Shown: positions 2,494 to 62,505 of the stretch, piece after piece
How the letters are laid out: every line of letters starts with the position of its first letter
How positions within the stretch are numbered: the stretch's first letter is position 1
Sequence record: OZ196212.1
Strand: one strand, 5' to 3'
Length of the DNA stretch: 64,000 bases
The notes under the pieces: model-generated
Seen by the model: the letters and a program-made list of their open reading frames with translations, nothing else
Databases searched by the model: none
Told to the model about the DNA's origin: nothing
Made by a program: the position numbers and the translations under genes

Positions 2494-2514
2494 AGCCCCG
2501 AAAGGGGCTTTTTT
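2494..2514 (+). terminator. intrinsic terminator
   Basis: agcccc-GAAA-ggggct plus T6. Confidence 0.9.
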
Positions 2515-2520
2515 AGGTTT

Positions 2521-2597
2521 GAGCGGAATTATTCCGTCTCATCTTAGTAGTATTAGTGATCTTCGAGATATTCGAGTAATTAGGGGTATTAGTTTAG
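2521..2597. repeat. 9-bp-periodic cassette, copy 1
   Basis: ATTCCGTCTCATCTTAGTAG at 2531-2550 (identical at 46932-46951); TT(A/C)G at 2544, 2553, 2562, 2571, 2580, 2589. Confidence 0.9.
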
Positions 2598-2621
2598 AAC
2601 CACCGCGAATCGTCGTATAAT
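2593..2621 (+). promoter_or_regulatory. sigma70-like promoter, GTTTA class
   Basis: TTTAGA-17-TATAAT. Confidence 0.65.
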
Positions 2622-22520: not shown

Positions 22521-23422
22521 TGAAAGTGATTGTAACAGTTGGTGTACCTGCTTCGGGTAAAACAACATGGGCAGAACAGTTCTGTGCAAAAACTGGCGCA
22601 GTGAACGTGAACCGTGATGACGCTCGTCAAGAGCTATTCGGTCCCTTCAAATGGGGTGAATACACGTTCAAAAAAGCTCAAGAAGAGCTTGTGACTAAAG
22701 TCAACAAAGACAAAGCATTGCTTGCACTGAGCAAAGGCAAGAGCGTCGTGATCTCTGATACGAACTTGAACCCTGAGTATCGTCAAGTGTGGAAGTCTAT
22801 CGCTGACCAATTTGATGCTGAATATGAAGAAAAGCTTTTTCATATCAACTTCGACGAAGCACATAAGCGCGATGAAGCACGTGAAATGACAGTTGGCAAG
22901 AAAATTCTAACTAACATGCTTCAAAACTACCATCGCATGAACCGCGACTTAATCATTGCACACTTCAAAGAGTTGCTTGAGAAGCAGTGGGCTATGTGTG
23001 ATCAGCTTGTTGTATTGAGCGACATCGATGGTACAGTGGCAGAAATGCATAAAGGCGTTAAAGGCAAGCGTTCACCATTTGAGTGGAAGCGTGTTGGTGA
23101 AGATACACCACGTAAAAACGTGCTGTACGCACTAGACGCATTAGCAAAAGACTACGCTGTGTGGTTCATGAGCGGTCGTGACGGTTCATGTGAGCCAGAG
23201 ACAGAAGCATGGTTACTTGAACATGCACCGTTCTACACGGGTCTTGTGATGCGTGCTCCAAGCGATTCACGCCCAGACTGGGTAATCAAACTAGAATTGA
23301 TGTACAATCTAGCACTACACGGTATCAAGCCGCTTGTTATGTTCGATGACCGTGATCAAGTAGTAAACACTTTGCGCGAAGTTGGCGTTGAAGTATGGCA
23401 AGTTCAACCAGGTAATTTTTAG
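22520..23422 (+). CDS. pseT: polynucleotide 5'-kinase / 3'-phosphatase
   Basis: GVPASGKT, RDD, SDTN, DIDGT, SGRD, FDDR. Confidence 0.97.
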   Translation: MKVIVTVGVPASGKTTWAEQFCAKTGAVNVNRDDARQELFGPFKWGEYTFKKAQEELVTKVNKDKALLALSKGKSVVISDTNLNPEYRQVWKSIADQFDAEYEEKLFHINFDEAHKRDEAREMTVGKKILTNMLQNYHRMNRDLIIAHFKELLEKQWAMCDQLVVLSDIDGTVAEMHKGVKGKRSPFEWKRVGEDTPRKNVLYALDALAKDYAVWFMSGRDGSCEPETEAWLLEHAPFYTGLVMRAPSDSRPDWVIKLELMYNLALHGIKPLVMFDDRDQVVNTLREVGVEVWQVQPGNF

Positions 23423-46321: not shown

Positions 46322-46879
46322 ATGGCATTTTTGAATAGAAAAGAATTGGATACAAGTGAGATAACCGAAGCTGATATGCAATACGCGATTGCAGTGCAGA
46401 GTGTATGGATCAACAAGCGATACACAGCGATGATACCGAACTGTTTCACCACAGTGACACACGACAACGAAGCTGACTTGTATGGCATTCGACCAAGTGG
46501 TCTATGTGATGAGATTGAAATCAAGGTATCGAAAGCTGATTTCCGTATCGATGAGAAGAAAACAGTCAAAGTATTAGACGAAGCCGCACCAACACGTTGG
46601 AATCGATACACAGACGTTCTCAAACGCACAGCATTGACCGATGGCAACATGAGCAACTACTTCTGGTATGCTTTCCCTAAAGGGCTTGTAGACCACGCAG
46701 ACGTTCCAGATTGGGCAGGCATCATTGAAGTAGATGGCTTACTGAATGCTCATGAAGTAAGAATGCCAAAGCGACTTCATGGTAGAAAGCTGTCAATCGA
46801 AGAACAACTCAAGCAAATCAAGAAGCTTGGTTACCGATTCTGGAATCTAGTCAAGAAGAACAAATCAAAAGCCCCTTAA
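46322..46879 (+). CDS. MmcB-like PD-(D/E)xK nuclease-fold protein
   Basis: EADLYGI..EIEIKVSKADF..NYFWYAFP. Confidence 0.8.
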   Translation: MAFLNRKELDTSEITEADMQYAIAVQSVWINKRYTAMIPNCFTTVTHDNEADLYGIRPSGLCDEIEIKVSKADFRIDEKKTVKVLDEAAPTRWNRYTDVLKRTALTDGNMSNYFWYAFPKGLVDHADVPDWAGIIEVDGLLNAHEVRMPKRLHGRKLSIEEQLKQIKKLGYRFWNLVKKNKSKAP

Positions 46880-46892
46880 ATGGGGTTTTTTT
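46869..46892 (+). terminator. intrinsic terminator
   Basis: gcccc-ttaaat-ggggt plus T-run. Confidence 0.85.
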
Positions 46893-46920
46893 AGGTCTAG
46901 CGTTAGCGAAAGGAAATGGT

Positions 46921-46998
46921 GAGCCGGAAAAATTCCGTCTCATCTTAGTAGAATTAGTAGTTTTAGTGAAGTTAGTGGTATTAGAGATATTAGAAGTG
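46921..46998. repeat. 9-bp-periodic cassette, copy 2
   Basis: 20-bp anchor 46932-46951; TTAG at 46945, 46954, 46963, 46972, 46981, 46990. Confidence 0.9.
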
Positions 46999-47005
46999 AA
47001 TTAAT

Positions 47006-47047
47006 TCAACAAATTTGTTGACAACTCTGAATACTTGATGCTAATAT
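47006..47047 (+). promoter_or_regulatory. early promoter with a 16-bp palindrome over -35
   Basis: TCAACAAATTTGTTGA 47006-47021; TTGACA-18-TAATAT. Confidence 0.7.
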
Positions 47048-47086: not shown

Positions 47087-47620
47087 ATGAACATTAAAGA
47101 AGCTGAATCTGCACTGCAAGACATTGCACTGCTTTCTGCAAGCGAAGATGACGGTGATATTGCAGTTGTTGTATCTTGTGCGGGTATGAACAACTACTAC
47201 ACTGTGTGTCCGAGTGAGTTCAAGGACTTTTTGGACAACTATGAGGGCTTGAGTTATGTAGCTTTTGATTGGGTAGGCATCCCTGATGATCTGCAAGATG
47301 AAGAAATCGACTTTGACGGTCTACTAGCATGGTTCAATCTAGATGAATCGCAGCGTGAAATCTGCGAATGTCTCTACGATAACAACGTATGCATGTCTTA
47401 TGAAGACGCAGCCGAGAAAGTTGATGAATGTAACATCTTCAACGGCTCTGAAGAAGAGTACGCACAAGAAGTTGTGACTGAATTGATGGGTATCAATCTT
47501 GATGATATGCCAACAATAGTCAGCTCGAACATCAATTGGGGTGATGTGTTCATCGACTTAGACGCCGATGGTAATATTTACAAACTTGAACACGACAAGT
47601 TCTTAACGACGCAGTTCTAA
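47087..47620 (+). CDS. ArdA-like antirestriction DNA mimic
   Basis: very acidic; DWVGIP, G.EEEYAQE, SNINWGDVFIDL..G. Confidence 0.7.
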   Translation: MNIKEAESALQDIALLSASEDDGDIAVVVSCAGMNNYYTVCPSEFKDFLDNYEGLSYVAFDWVGIPDDLQDEEIDFDGLLAWFNLDESQREICECLYDNNVCMSYEDAAEKVDECNIFNGSEEEYAQEVVTELMGINLDDMPTIVSSNINWGDVFIDLDADGNIYKLEHDKFLTTQF

Positions 47621-47937
47621 TGTCTTTATTCGATGCAAATATGCGTGCTTTACCACAAGGCTATGAGTTCGTAGCGAACGTGCGCGGAACAGTTAAAGAG
47701 CTGTTGCCGCACGTTGAATCTGGTGATTACGTGCGCTGTAGAATGCTTGATGAGTGCGATAAAACGCCACGCGTTGAAATCATACTCAAATCAGGCAACG
47801 TTATTCTGCAAGAGACGCTTGGGCGATTCGATGGTTGGTTGACGTACGAGGGTCATATTGACCTAGTGACTGACTATCCGTACGAGCATATTCGTGCAGA
47901 AGCTGTTGAGTTTTTTAAAAGGTACGACAATGAGTAG
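47620..47937 (+). CDS. hypothetical protein
   Basis: coupled ORF. Confidence 0.7.
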   Translation: MSLFDANMRALPQGYEFVANVRGTVKELLPHVESGDYVRCRMLDECDKTPRVEIILKSGNVILQETLGRFDGWLTYEGHIDLVTDYPYEHIRAEAVEFFKRYDNE

Positions 47938-48505
47938 TACAAGCGGTAACGTCAACAAAGACGATTACTACGCTACGCCTGACTGGTTAGTTACTGAGTT
48001 CTTATTAGAATTCGAGACCAGAATACAACACGAACATGAGAAGAGCATGGCAGGAATGTATGTGCTTGACCCATCGTGTGGTGGCTGTAGCGAACATGAC
48101 GCTGCTTACCCTGTTGCATACAAAGACTTGTATCATGTTGACATCGACACGATGGACATTCGTGAAGACTCGCACGCTCAACGCGTGTGTAACTATCTCG
48201 AAACGCCAGTCGATATGAAGTATGATATGATCATGACTAATCCTCCATTTAGCTTATCAGTAGATTTTGCTGAAAAAGCGTTATCCGAAGTCGATGATGG
48301 TGGATATGTCGTGATGTTGCAACGATTAAACTGGTTAGGTAGCATTAAGCGCAAGCCGTTCTGGGACGAAGCTCCGTTAAGAGCAGTGCTTGTGCATCAC
48401 AGACGCCCGAGCTTTCACGGTACGAAAGGCACTGACTCGATTGAGTACGCGCACTTTGTATTCCAGAAAGGTTACACGGGTATAGCAGAGTTGATGGTTA
48501 TATAG
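47930..48505 (+). CDS. amino (N6-adenine-type) DNA methyltransferase
   Basis: DDYYATP, LDPSCGG, TNPPF, RLNWL, EYAHFVF. Confidence 0.85.
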   Translation: MSSTSGNVNKDDYYATPDWLVTEFLLEFETRIQHEHEKSMAGMYVLDPSCGGCSEHDAAYPVAYKDLYHVDIDTMDIREDSHAQRVCNYLETPVDMKYDMIMTNPPFSLSVDFAEKALSEVDDGGYVVMLQRLNWLGSIKRKPFWDEAPLRAVLVHHRRPSFHGTKGTDSIEYAHFVFQKGYTGIAELMVI

Positions 48506-48540: not shown

Positions 48541-48897
48541 ATGAACCAAGTGAATATTTCATCATGCAACGGCTCAGTAACAGTAAACGGGGTCAGTTAC
48601 AAAGGTAACAACGTATCAGTCAGCAACGGCAAAGTCGTTATTGATGGCGTTGCTCAAGGCGACGTAGCCGAATCAAAGAACATCGTGATTACCGTACAAG
48701 GTAACGTGGGTTCAGTTCAATCACCAGATGGTACTATCATCGTACACGGTGACGTATCTGGTGATGTTCAGTCAACTAATGGCGACATTGAAGCTGAGGG
48801 TGTGGGCGGTAACGTAACTACGACTAATGGCGATGTTGACTGTTGGGAAGTCGCAGGTGCTGTGACTACAACTAACGGTGATATCAATCACAAATAA
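48541..48897 (+). CDS. beta-solenoid repeat protein (DUF4097-like)
   Basis: repeated V.T.NGD(V/I) units. Confidence 0.75.
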   Translation: MNQVNISSCNGSVTVNGVSYKGNNVSVSNGKVVIDGVAQGDVAESKNIVITVQGNVGSVQSPDGTIIVHGDVSGDVQSTNGDIEAEGVGGNVTTTNGDVDCWEVAGAVTTTNGDINHK

Positions 48898-49384: not shown

Positions 49385-51496
49385 ATGATTATTCACACTC
49401 CTGATTCAACCGTACAAACGTCTGGTAAGATGCGTACGGCTGGTTTTAATATGAAAGCAAGTGCCAAAGGCTTTCGCATCATTTCAACAACGCTTTACAA
49501 AGATCCAATTCTAGCTATTGTGCGTGAGCTAACGTGTAATGGCTGGGATGCTCATCAAATGAATGGCAACAAAGACACGGCAATCGAAGTACACTTACCG
49601 AACCAGTTTGAACCTTGGTTCAGTGTGAAAGATTTCGGCTGTGGTATGTCTGATGATGATATCTTTGGCGTTTACACAACTGTTTTCGACTCAACGAAAG
49701 ACGACTCGAACGACGTTATTGGCGCAATGGGTCTTGGTTCAAAGACACCGTTCAGCTACAACAACGGTCAATCGTTTACTGTTAAGTCAGTCAAAGACGG
49801 TCTGAAAGCTGTGTACTCTGCATATCTTGATCGTGGTGAGCCTGCTATCACGTGTATGAACGAGCCTGCACCAACTGATGAACCAGATGGCGTAGAAGTT
49901 ATCGTTCCTGTGCGTAAAGAAGACTTCAGTCGCTTCAAAGACGCTGCAAACAGTGTAATGCCGTACTTCAAGTCGCCTGTTGTTGACACCAATATCGCGC
50001 TAGATAAACGCGAGTTCGTACACATGGATGGCTACTACACTGAGACGAAGACTTACCACTATCGTTCAACTAACGTGTACGCAGTGATGGGTAACGTTTG
50101 CTATCCGCTGAACTCTGGTTACATTGAAGGCATCAATGATGTGCGTAGCTACTTCAAGTCAAGTGATCTATACATTGAATTCGCTATCGGTGAGCTAGAT
50201 GTAAGTGCGTCACGTGAAGAGTTGCACTATGATGACCGTACAATCGAGAACATCAATACACGTGTCAATGAAATCAACGAAGGTTTCTTGAAACAGTCGC
50301 AAGATTGGGTCGATGAGCAGAACTTTAAGCATATCAGTGAAGCATGGCGCGCTTGTGATAATCGCTTCAGTGACGTGATCATGGGTAAGATGATGTTTGG
50401 CGATGTTAAAGTCAACACATATCGCGACCAAATTCAGCGTGAGTTCTTGATCGATGACAAGCGTGGGCTTGGTGGTAAGACAGTGATGTTCCGTCCAGAG
50501 TCAATGAACAAAGAGGGCGTTGCGCGTCGTACTGATTATCATCGTGCGTCTGACATTCTTGATGTGCGTCGCGACTTCGAAGCTAAACCAATCATGGTTG
50601 TTCACGATGACTTGAAGACTGGTGGTGTTAGCATTGTCAAAGAGTACGTTCGTCAAACTCGTAATGCTGTGTATTACCATCACGACGAGAAATACTCAAC
50701 GACTGGTACGATTCTGCTGTTGAAAGCGCGTCTGCGTGACAGTGAATACGTTGTGCTTAAAACGTCTGACTTGAAAGCTGACTACACGCCAGAGAAGAAG
50801 CCGAAGAGCAAGAACGCCAAACCAGTAGCGCGTACTGTTCAACTGTATCGCGTGACGATTGGTGAAGACGACGTGCGCTCGATTGATGTTCATGAGCTTG
50901 ATAAGAAAGTTCTACGTGAAGATGGTGTTCACTTCGTGAGCTTGTATCGTGACTACATCGAACGCAACATCGGTGATGAACATGGCATGGAATACAATCG
51001 CGGTGTTGGTCTTGTTGAAACGATCATGCGTCTGAAAAATCTTAAAGAAGTGTATATCGTGCGTCGTGGTGAGATTGAACACATCAAATCAAACAAGAAC
51101 GCGATTAATCTTTTCGATTTGAAGTTTAACAAGCGTGAAGTACGTAGTAAAATCGACTGGAAGACGTACACGATCACTGACAATCTACACGGGTGGCGTT
51201 GTGCGCTTAAATCTGCGTGGTACAATGATGCAGTGCGCGAGTGCTTCGGCTATGAACGTACCGAACACACATGCAACACAACTATCGACCGTTTGTGTTC
51301 TGAATTCCCAGTTATCAAGCAAGTGCGCGAAGCTGAGAAAGAAAAGCATTTAGCGAAACTGATGAAGATTCAAGAGAATCCGCGCTATCAGTTAGCATGG
51401 AACTTGATTGACAACTGCACGTCTAATTCAGATGCGCAACAACTAATGACCCTATTGAGAGGAAAACGTAATGGTAAACTTACCAATCGAAACTAA
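49385..51496 (+). CDS. rIIA: RIIA lysis-inhibition accessory protein
   Basis: GHKL-like RELTCNGWDAH, VKDFGCGMS, GAMGLGSKTPF, REELHYD. Confidence 0.95.
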   Translation: MIIHTPDSTVQTSGKMRTAGFNMKASAKGFRIISTTLYKDPILAIVRELTCNGWDAHQMNGNKDTAIEVHLPNQFEPWFSVKDFGCGMSDDDIFGVYTTVFDSTKDDSNDVIGAMGLGSKTPFSYNNGQSFTVKSVKDGLKAVYSAYLDRGEPAITCMNEPAPTDEPDGVEVIVPVRKEDFSRFKDAANSVMPYFKSPVVDTNIALDKREFVHMDGYYTETKTYHYRSTNVYAVMGNVCYPLNSGYIEGINDVRSYFKSSDLYIEFAIGELDVSASREELHYDDRTIENINTRVNEINEGFLKQSQDWVDEQNFKHISEAWRACDNRFSDVIMGKMMFGDVKVNTYRDQIQREFLIDDKRGLGGKTVMFRPESMNKEGVARRTDYHRASDILDVRRDFEAKPIMVVHDDLKTGGVSIVKEYVRQTRNAVYYHHDEKYSTTGTILLLKARLRDSEYVVLKTSDLKADYTPEKKPKSKNAKPVARTVQLYRVTIGEDDVRSIDVHELDKKVLREDGVHFVSLYRDYIERNIGDEHGMEYNRGVGLVETIMRLKNLKEVYIVRRGEIEHIKSNKNAINLFDLKFNKREVRSKIDWKTYTITDNLHGWRCALKSAWYNDAVRECFGYERTEHTCNTTIDRLCSEFPVIKQVREAEKEKHLAKLMKIQENPRYQLAWNLIDNCTSNSDAQQLMTLLRGKRNGKLTNRN

Positions 51497-61566: not shown

Positions 61567-62505
61567 ATGAAAATCGATTCGATTGCAAAAATCATCAAAG
61601 ACTTGGGTATGATATGCAAGACGCCATTTACATACAATGGCAATGTGTATCTACCAAAGACAATGAAGCTGCGTGGTGAAGTTCGACAAGGGTTCACTTG
61701 TCCTGCTATGTGCGGATCTTGCTGTGGGAATTGGTCTCTTGATTATATACCAGAAAAATATTTGAAGCATGACTCACTTGAGTCACTTCCACCACTCGCG
61801 TTAGTGTATGGGCAGAACTTCATCAAACGAACTGTCAATGTCAATGGCAAAGAGATTGAGTTCATAACTGACCCACAAGGCGATGACGTACCACAGCAAA
61901 CAAATAAGCCAGACGGGTGTCGGTATCTAAACAAAGAAGGGCGATGTGATATACATAACTTTGTGCTGTCAGGTCGTTACGGTCAACCATTCAGTTGTGA
62001 CTTTGAGATTATTCGATTCATATCACCACAAGGCGAGCCAGACGGCTATATTGAAAATGCTGAAAGCGTGTCTGAATACAATGTCAATCCATCAAACCGA
62101 ATGGGGCGCGTCAACACTGAGTATTATCGATATGCTCGACGCATGAAAGATATCAATGGCGAGCATCGCGACGATAAACCATTTGACCATCCTGACTATG
62201 ATGGCATGAGTGTTCAAGAAATCCCGGGACCAAAGTGTCGCATCACACCAATTGACCAAGACAGCATTGATGATGCTGTGCGCAAATTCAGTAGACTACT
62301 TGAATGGGCTGACTATCTTGGCATTGAAACATGGATCCCTGAAATGATTGAGTGGATTAAGAATGGCTCAAGTGATTCGCTAATCGTCAACGCGAAACGC
62401 TCAAGTAATCATGAGTCCATCGCTGCAATACCATTCGATGTTGAATACAATGATGGTAAGTTAGTCAAATCATCACAAATGATCGGATTATCTCAATTTT
62501 TATAA
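61567..62505 (+). CDS. YkgJ/CxxCxxCC-family Cys-cluster protein
   Basis: CPAMCGSCC, CRYL..GRCDIH..QPFSC; start ATG 61567. Confidence 0.7.
   Translation: MKIDSIAKIIKDLGMICKTPFTYNGNVYLPKTMKLRGEVRQGFTCPAMCGSCCGNWSLDYIPEKYLKHDSLESLPPLALVYGQNFIKRTVNVNGKEIEFITDPQGDDVPQQTNKPDGCRYLNKEGRCDIHNFVLSGRYGQPFSCDFEIIRFISPQGEPDGYIENAESVSEYNVNPSNRMGRVNTEYYRYARRMKDINGEHRDDKPFDHPDYDGMSVQEIPGPKCRITPIDQDSIDDAVRKFSRLLEWADYLGIETWIPEMIEWIKNGSSDSLIVNAKRSSNHESIAAIPFDVEYNDGKLVKSSQMIGLSQFL

Follow-up and report, generated by a model that had tools for sequence, protein, structure and literature searches.

A six-copy hairpin and phased TTAG-array cassette conserved in KVP40-like Vibrio phages

The cassette described here is one of six members of an orientation-locked, non-coding module that is specific to KVP40-like T4-type Vibrio phages. 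It comprises a main stem-loop, an invariant linker and an array of 9 bp units that begin with TTAG, usually preceded by a mini-hairpin motif, and it is clearly functional. Among the roles considered, that of an unwinding or single-strand initiation signal, i.e. an origin-like element, was found to be the best single reading and is put forward tentatively.

Sequence data and analysis

The stretch of DNA that was analysed (64,000 nucleotides; referred to below as the window) corresponds to positions 62001–126000 of Vibrio phage D527 (OZ196212.1, 254,106 bp), to which it was matched by megablast with 100% identity. The close relatives of D527 found in the same way are about 18 oyster-farm isolates, and the identity to KVP40, phi-pp2, ValKK3, VH7D and others is approximately 74%. 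The D527 group belongs to the KVP40-like T4-type myoviruses (Schizotequatrovirus); nt-1 is a Mylasvirus. The remainder of the D527 record was scanned in separate pieces that were left unjoined, and no repaired, consensus or ancestral sequence was built.

The anatomy of the cassette was taken from an ungapped alignment (A2) of 29 copies and 85 columns. The covariance model was likewise derived from 29 cassette copies. The DnaA box, the T4 late-promoter octamer and the Mot-box core were used in their generally known forms unless quoted in the PeSL study, and matches to them are treated as leads only. The six copies in D527 are designated c1–c6; the window copy under study is c3, and c2 is the copy that an earlier reading of the window (the original prediction) had called cassette 1.

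Layout of the window copies

The positions of the features are given in Table 1.

Table 1. Features of the window and the six cassette copies of D527. Positions are those of the window except where D527 is given.
Feature	Position	Strand	Description
Weak terminator-like hairpin	46870–46892	+	4–5 bp G+C stem, 6 nt loop, seven T; overlaps the stop codon of the upstream gene (46322–46879)
DNA mini-hairpin motif GCGTTAGC, GCGNNAGC class	46900–46907	+	Sense strand, accessory upstream module
GAGCCGGAAAA	46921–46931	+	11-mer preceding the 20-mer
Main stem-loop	46921–46941	+	Up to 9 pairs, AAA loop; 3' arm within the shared 20-mer
TCATC linker	46940–46944	+	Joins stem-loop to array; invariant
Array of six 9 bp units	46945–46998	+	Each begins TTAG; 72% A+T, nearly C-free strand
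Perfect 16 bp palindrome	47006–47021	+	D527-lineage-specific; outside the conserved cassette
Sigma70-type promoter	47018–47047	+	TTGACA 47018–47023, 18 nt spacer, TG-n-TAATAT (TAATAT 47042–47047)
Gene for a very acidic 177-aa protein	47087–47620	+	phrog_15771 (unknown function); context, outside the cis element
Cassette 1 (= c2)	2494–2621	+	Paralogous copy, upstream of the glutaredoxin gene (2640–2882)
Terminator of cassette 1	2494–2515	+	
Stem-loop of cassette 1	2521–2540	+	
Array of cassette 1	2544–2597	+	
Promoter of cassette 1	2593–2621	+	
c1	D527 22640	−	Before uvsY
c2	D527 64544 (window 2544)	+	gp24 vertex gene upstream, glutaredoxin gene downstream
c3	D527 108945	+	Flagged cassette in the window
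c4	D527 160570	+	Array runs into the start codon of a 229-aa gene
c5	D527 222017	−	Between the tail-tube gene and the dNMP kinase gene
c6	D527 247952	+	Tail collar fibre gene upstream, fibritin downstream

The original prediction had reported an identical 20-mer in c2 and c3, and this was confirmed: the 20-mer at 46932–46951 has a sole other match in the window at up to three mismatches (2531–2550), with none expected from shuffles. The six TTAG of c3 begin at the predicted positions 46945, 46954, 46963, 46972, 46981 and 46990. The phased four-TTAG pattern occurs nowhere else in the window (0.01 expected), and a period-9 array was called at 46945–46993 by Tandem Repeats Finder. The palindrome does overlap the −35 hexamer, as had been noted, and the extended −10 element of the c3 promoter was placed at 47039–47047 by the promoter scan. 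The gene downstream of c2 gave a Pfam Glutaredoxin match.

Other details of the prediction required correction. The terminator ahead of c3 is present as a small stem plus a T run but is weak, and it was not called by the terminator scan. The 11-mer GAGCCGGAAAA, supposed to recur in c2, has a single match; c2 has GAGCGGAATTA there. The two copies share their orientation, as claimed, but not the number of TTAG, since c2 has four TTAG and two TTCG in phase. Instead of only two cassettes there are six per genome. The palindrome and the terminator had been taken as parts of the cassette; both are lineage-specific and lie outside the conserved module. Among the orthologues of copy 3 that were examined, neither the left half of the palindrome nor the c3 terminator extends beyond D527 and K566, and the right half of the palindrome (the −35 region) alone is conserved. 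The stem, the linker and the first unit are under constraint, and this, rather than a recent duplication, accounts for the identity of the 20-mer within the window.

Small 'hypothetical protein' coding sequences have been auto-annotated over several cassettes: at 22539–22700, 160540–160629, 221928–222047 and 247879–248052 of D527, at 108952–109071 of K566 and at about 46900–47047 of the window. To judge from the array of the window copy, in which TAGs close one frame and the other two frames are without start codons, these calls are probably spurious.

Distribution and spacing of the copies

The covariance model gave exactly six matches in D527, with scores of between 76.7 bits (c2) and 106 bits; the next best match scored 14 bits. 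Each of the six copies has the orientation of the genes beside it, and KVP40 and VH7D carry the cassette at the same six loci as D527. A blastn search located it in about 50 related Vibrio phage records at 5–6 places per complete genome, copy numbers that for these genomes are counts of BLAST places alone; no credible blastn match was obtained outside related Vibrio phage records. When IMG/VR and the JGI metagenomes were searched with anchored patterns, only KVP40, VH7D and a few marine contigs were recovered. The anchored patterns replaced a generic phased five-TTAG pattern, which was abandoned because its matches in IMG/VR were unrelated coding repeats, mostly in giant-virus bins.

No family corresponding to the cassette was found in Rfam 15, in which the best scores were 15–16.5 bits with E above 3, far under the gathering scores. 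Nothing is annotated at the cassette in the KVP40 GenBank record. The cassette is not described in the PeSL study, which deals with nt-1 and KVP40, or in the study of the D527 collection; the original KVP40 genome paper (PMC180978) was not covered.

Variant arrangements were seen outside D527. Four marine metagenome contigs contain a further type of cassette locus, with an extra GAA-loop hairpin between the mini-hairpin motif and the main stem-loop and with surroundings of little coding potential; in one of these contigs the main stem is broken by two mismatches. At the c5 locus of Vibrio phage 1.081.O (MG592456.1), two complete cassettes stand in tandem, 164 bp apart (locus positions 226–353 and 390–517), with seven TTAG units in the first and six in the second.

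On the circular map of D527 the gaps between copies are 41.9, 44.4, 51.6, 61.4, 25.9 and 28.8 kb. By a post hoc test the spacing is more even than that of randomly placed copies: the smallest gap gave P = 0.009 and the variance P = 0.006. Such spacing could arise from recombinational loss of closely spaced direct repeats.

Array, linker and hairpins

Unit positions 1–4 are T, T, A and G in 96–100% of the units in alignment A2. Position 5 is T in 66% and A in 26%, position 6 is A in 51% and G in 46%, position 7 is A or G in 43% each, position 8 is T in 62% and A in 32%, and position 9 is A in 62% and T in 21%. The share of C at the spacer positions is 1.7%, compared with 21% genome-wide. The TCATC columns of the linker are identical in 29 of the 29 copies. 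The number of units, which the original prediction regarded as maintained, is so only roughly, arrays ranging from 5 to 7 units.

The arrays are 69–76% A+T and the stability of their 54 bp duplexes falls in the lowest 0.05–0.7% of the genome; for the c3 array, just 0.23% of genome windows are equally unstable. The possibility that the C-poor array yields an unusually unstructured RNA was ruled out by its folding energy, which lies between the 12th and 54th percentiles of genome windows.

In the main stem 88.9% of the cells are paired, compared with 36–55% when the partner is slid, and the stem was recovered by RNAalifold and by DNA folding alike. Two adjacent pairs are changed from G–C to C–G in KVP40 c5, VH7D c5 and VH7D c3; these compensatory changes probably derive from only one or two events. 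On the sense strand G–U pairs are frequent and A–C pairs are absent.

The mini-hairpin motif, GCGN(1-2)AGC, was counted on the sense strand of 22 of the 29 copies and on the antisense strand of none, D527 c1 falling outside the counting window although it has the motif, fused to a shortened stem-loop. The motif is usually situated 35–41 nt ahead of the linker. Its stem is constant and its loop has four variants: GAA, GCA, GTTA (in the window copy) and GTCA. Mini-hairpins of this class are extraordinarily stable as DNA and far less so as RNA (PMC13037366). In D527 c1 (22587–22671, − strand) the fusion results from a deletion joining the motif to the loop, which leaves a four-pair stem with a seven-A loop; the array and linker of this copy are intact despite the truncation.

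Conservation and history

The 78 nt core of D527 is 72–94% identical to that of KVP40 or VH7D, whereas the identity at fourfold-degenerate sites of the gene immediately downstream is 27–51%. This difference indicates that the cassette is under purifying selection, with occasional gene conversion. The view of the original prediction that a selected cis element is involved, and not a recent duplication, was thus upheld by orthologues at the same loci; the conservation across related phages that it had proposed as a check was also found, with the phase and the invariant columns maintained. The family is old, since orthologous copies are on average closer to one another than paralogous copies (mean identity 0.87 versus 0.805).

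Exchange between copies was observed as well. The c3 array of K566 (OZ196521.1 108624–109314, locus about 317–370) consists of c2-type units, including two TTCG, and its sequence makes a clear case for gene conversion or recombination between two copies that lie 44 kb from each other. Relative to D527, the K566 array is shorter by 24 bp, so that the left half of the palindrome is missing. The c3 and c5 copies of VH7D are 96% identical.

Promoters, terminators and neighbouring genes

In each of the three genomes examined in full, c1, c2, c5 and c6 come after a strong T-run intrinsic terminator. At a distance of 0–27 bp past the array, a sigma70-like promoter is located at c1, c2, c3, c5 and c6, the exception being VH7D c1, at which none was found. 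The c3 promoter is conserved in K566, F86, KVP40, nt-1 and VH7D, and is predicted to drive the gene at 47087–47620. Copy c4 lies inside an operon and has neither terminator nor promoter; its unit 5 is a Shine–Dalgarno sequence and the start codon is in unit 6. Between the upstream stop codon and the stem-loop there is no terminator at c4 in any genome, nor at c3 in KVP40, nt-1, VH7D or F86.

Within 400 bp upstream, no sigma70-like site was found at 16 of 18 copies; the remaining two, both of VH7D, have weak 9-of-12 matches that are not conserved. Nor was any late-type octamer found upstream, and the only Mot-box-like match is about 290–305 bp upstream of c5, in D527 and KVP40. The upstream promoter scan ruled out the cassette being a leader downstream of its own promoter. 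Past the linker of c6, a late-promoter-type octamer occurs at about 137 nt in all genomes (D527, KVP40 and VH7D), and in D527 a second one overlaps unit 6 (octamers at about 248000 and 248082 of the record); c6 therefore precedes both early-type and late-type fibritin promoters.

Four of the six copies are situated where late structural genes end (gp35-like, gp24, the tail-tube gene and gp12), beside an embedded early-type promoter, and one of these four is directly upstream of uvsY. The flanking genes differ from locus to locus, with no known initiator gene among them. The nearest DnaA-box-like 9-mer is 2.3 kb off, and such boxes are about as numerous in the window as expected by chance; with none nearby, an origin dependent on host DnaA was ruled out. 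The D527 annotation includes genes for primase, a DnaB-like helicase, a helicase loader and SSB, a complete T4-type primosome. Homologues of AsiA and DsbA are present. A MotA-like activator was sought beside asiA and none was found: a 243-aa neighbour gave no informative match and a 97-aa neighbour, encoded directly after the AsiA anti-sigma gene (D527 194473–194766), is Tad2-like (Thoeris anti-defence 2; Pfam E = 1.7e-25).

The gene downstream of c3 had been called ArdA-like. ArdA is absent from the matches of its product in Pfam, PHROGs and PDB sequences, and the resemblance is one of acidity alone (42 D+E versus 6 K+R, pI 4.05); action as a DNA mimic is conceivable. The gene follows a strong extended −10 promoter, and a DNA methyltransferase gene (47894–48505) comes two genes downstream of it. 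Its KVP40 orthologue is unannotated in AY283928.2. In the same region, the ORF at 48541–48897 gave a sub-threshold bactofilin-like match, and a 703-aa protein encoded downstream of the methyltransferase gene (49385–51496) has a GHKL (HATPase_c_3) ATPase domain.

Interpretation

The compensated stem together with the strand-specific, DNA-type mini-hairpin argues for a role in opened or single-stranded DNA, not in plain duplex. At the four loci where a strong terminator stands ahead of the cassette and the next promoter beyond it, a role in RNA is hard to sustain. In the mechanism that we favour, the module would act once the DNA has been opened. Melting of the A+T-rich array would come from negative supercoiling behind the adjacent promoter, and the opened sense strand would fold into its hairpins. 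The structured single strand might then be an entry or priming signal for the T4-type helicase loader, helicase and primase, with the invariant TTAG at 9 nt intervals forming the contact for a putative protein, and the six evenly spaced cassettes would be origin-like initiation sites.

This reading is the best single one on account of the extreme meltability of the array, the promoter firing away from it and so leaving negative supercoiling, the even dispersal with four copies beside late structural genes, the copy at uvsY (the place of T4 oriF) and the complete T4-type primosome. Our confidence is held low because the order found at the T4 R-loop origins, with the promoter upstream of the unwinding element, is not seen here, the T4 origins have no shared motif, and c4 is inside an operon. 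Copy c4, with its unit 5 as a ribosome-binding site, agrees no less well with a role in RNA or as an operator. The meltable array, even spacing, strand-specific mini-hairpins and uvsY copy are compatible with the term origin-like in the original prediction; against it, no DnaA box nearby, no adjacent initiator gene and no conserved promoter-like site upstream were found, and an origin role is not established. A wider proposal, which we regard as doubtful, is that KVP40-like phages mark their replication starts by a shared sequence-defined signal, namely six evenly spaced modules opened by supercoiling, with strand-specific DNA hairpins and phased TTAG contacts for a dedicated, possibly hexameric, loader or primase.

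It is possible, if rather improbable, that the array is instead a double-stranded operator or enhancer, at which a putative phage or host protein binds six head-to-tail 9 bp sites cooperatively and switches the adjacent early-type promoters on or off, acting at c4 as a roadblock inside the operon. Base preferences at all nine unit positions would alone account for the C-poor strand, and a regulatory site would be in keeping with a sigma70-like promoter after the array at five of the six loci, an orientation fixed relative to that promoter, and the presence of AsiA and DsbA homologues where no MotA-like activator was found. Such an operator leaves the compensated stem-loop and the strand-specific mini-hairpin motif unexplained and gives no reason for the even spacing; moreover, the −35 hexamer is not at a fixed distance from the array (0–27 bp), c4 has no promoter, and isolated 9 bp units show no enrichment in the rest of the genome (75 observed versus 146 ± 16 in block shuffles).

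An element acting in RNA is unlikely. In long transcripts the stem-loop and six UUAG would be a binding platform or processing site, for a putative multimeric RNA-binding protein or endoribonuclease, that governs the stability or translation of the neighbouring cistrons. With c1, c2, c5 and c6 enclosed between a strong intrinsic terminator and the next promoter, little RNA should contain the cassette, and there is no conserved promoter-like site within 400 bp upstream; the mini-hairpin motif is the DNA-stable and not the RNA-stable form, the array RNA is not unusually unstructured and Rfam gave no match. Transcripts could nevertheless be the target in so far as the sense-strand stem has G–U and no A–C pairs, the orientation is always that of transcription, no terminator separates the stop codon from the stem-loop at c4 or at c3 in the four phages named above, and the c4 array provides the Shine–Dalgarno sequence and start codon.

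The notion of a dispersed intergenic repeat kept by gene conversion, which mediates shuffling in the manner of a PeSL and is otherwise functionless, draws on the swapped K566 array, the near-identity of VH7D c3 and c5, the tandem duplicate in 1.081.O and the PeSL-mediated exchanges reported for nt-1 and KVP40 (PeSL study), but is very improbable given that the loci are stable group-wide with orthologues closer than paralogues, that phase and invariant columns are maintained, and that conservation between genomes is far above that of neutral sites, which conversion within a genome cannot produce.

Implications

A strongly conserved, group-limited module in six copies offers a concrete handle on the start of replication in T4-type phages beyond T4, and equally on how the early and middle programme of the KVP40 group is organised without a MotA-type activator. 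The cassette coordinates are directly checkable against maps of read depth, transcript ends and occupancy. They are also of relevance to annotation, in which automated pipelines set small 'hypothetical protein' genes on the arrays. If the proposal of a shared sequence-defined start signal is true, the cassette would represent the first origin motif shared within a T4-type phage, in contrast to T4, whose own origins have none in common.

Comparison with known systems

The origins of T4 have no common motif; they lie in late-gene regions with an embedded early-type promoter pattern, oriF being at uvsY (T4 review). The cassette is similar to the R-loop origins oriF (uvsY) and oriG (gene 34) in its several dispersed sites, mostly in late-gene regions, in its coupling to a promoter and in its easily unwound A+T-rich segment of about 50 bp; one copy is directly upstream of uvsY. 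Both oriF and oriG require a promoter upstream of the unwinding element (T4 review). That promoter is MotA-dependent and immediately upstream, with its transcript entering the element, whereas the array of the cassette is upstream of its promoter, which is therefore downstream and fires away. A further difference is that the T4 origins are without a sequence motif and the cassette copies are one sequence family.

The repeats of T4 oriE are likewise evenly spaced short direct repeats beside an early-type promoter, found at the same locus in relatives. They have a length of 12 nt (T4 review), compared with 9 in the cassette, and occur at one locus instead of six; the cassette has no adjacent repE-like genes, and its array is accompanied by hairpins. 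An evenly spaced cluster of direct repeats, here six 9 bp units, is also a feature of iteron origins, but no adjacent initiator gene or DnaA boxes were found with it. Plasmid iterons are 17–22 bp in length, and the cassette unit is shorter.

The omega heptads of pSM19035, ParR/parC and the MetJ met-boxes are operators or centromeres made of 5–10 tandem repeats of 7–11 bp and bound by small repressors. Like the cassette array, these are unspaced, head-to-tail short repeats abutting a promoter; unlike the cassette, they have no associated hairpins or strand-specific motifs. The RNA sites of TRAP and HutP are NAG repeats with 2–4 nt spacers, and HutP is a hexamer. Regularly spaced UAG triplets, six of them as for the HutP hexamer, are common to these sites and the cassette. 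The cassette differs in that its spacer is 6 nt, that it has no upstream promoter and is not in a promoter-downstream leader, and that it overlaps no terminator or antiterminator and, at c4 only, a ribosome-binding site.

The PeSL motifs of T4-like phages, which occur in nt-1 and KVP40, are also intergenic, combine a terminator-type stem-loop with an early promoter and undergo exchanges between copies. PeSLs are many, are situated in hyperplastic regions and are made up of an A+T-rich region, a promoter, a stem-loop and a ribosome-binding site (PeSL study). The cassette has a promoter and a preceding terminator at most loci, yet it occupies six fixed loci, of which four are in conserved core regions, and its mini-hairpin, stem-loop and phased TTAG array are absent from the PeSL description.

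Strand-specific stable DNA hairpins, including the mini-hairpin class GCGNAGC/GCGNNAGC, link the cassette to the complementary-strand origins of G4, St-1 and alpha3 and to plasmid ssiA. Mini-hairpin DNA recurs at these primase-dependent initiation sites, and the variant in the window, GCGTTAGC, is the one given for St-1 and alpha3 (PMC13037366). Signals of the G4/ssiA type work on genomes that are single-stranded or on displaced strands of plasmids and, unlike the cassette, lack a phased array of repeats. So far undescribed in the PeSL and D527 studies, the cassette is kin to the cis signals near promoters and origins in which phased repeats and hairpins are combined.
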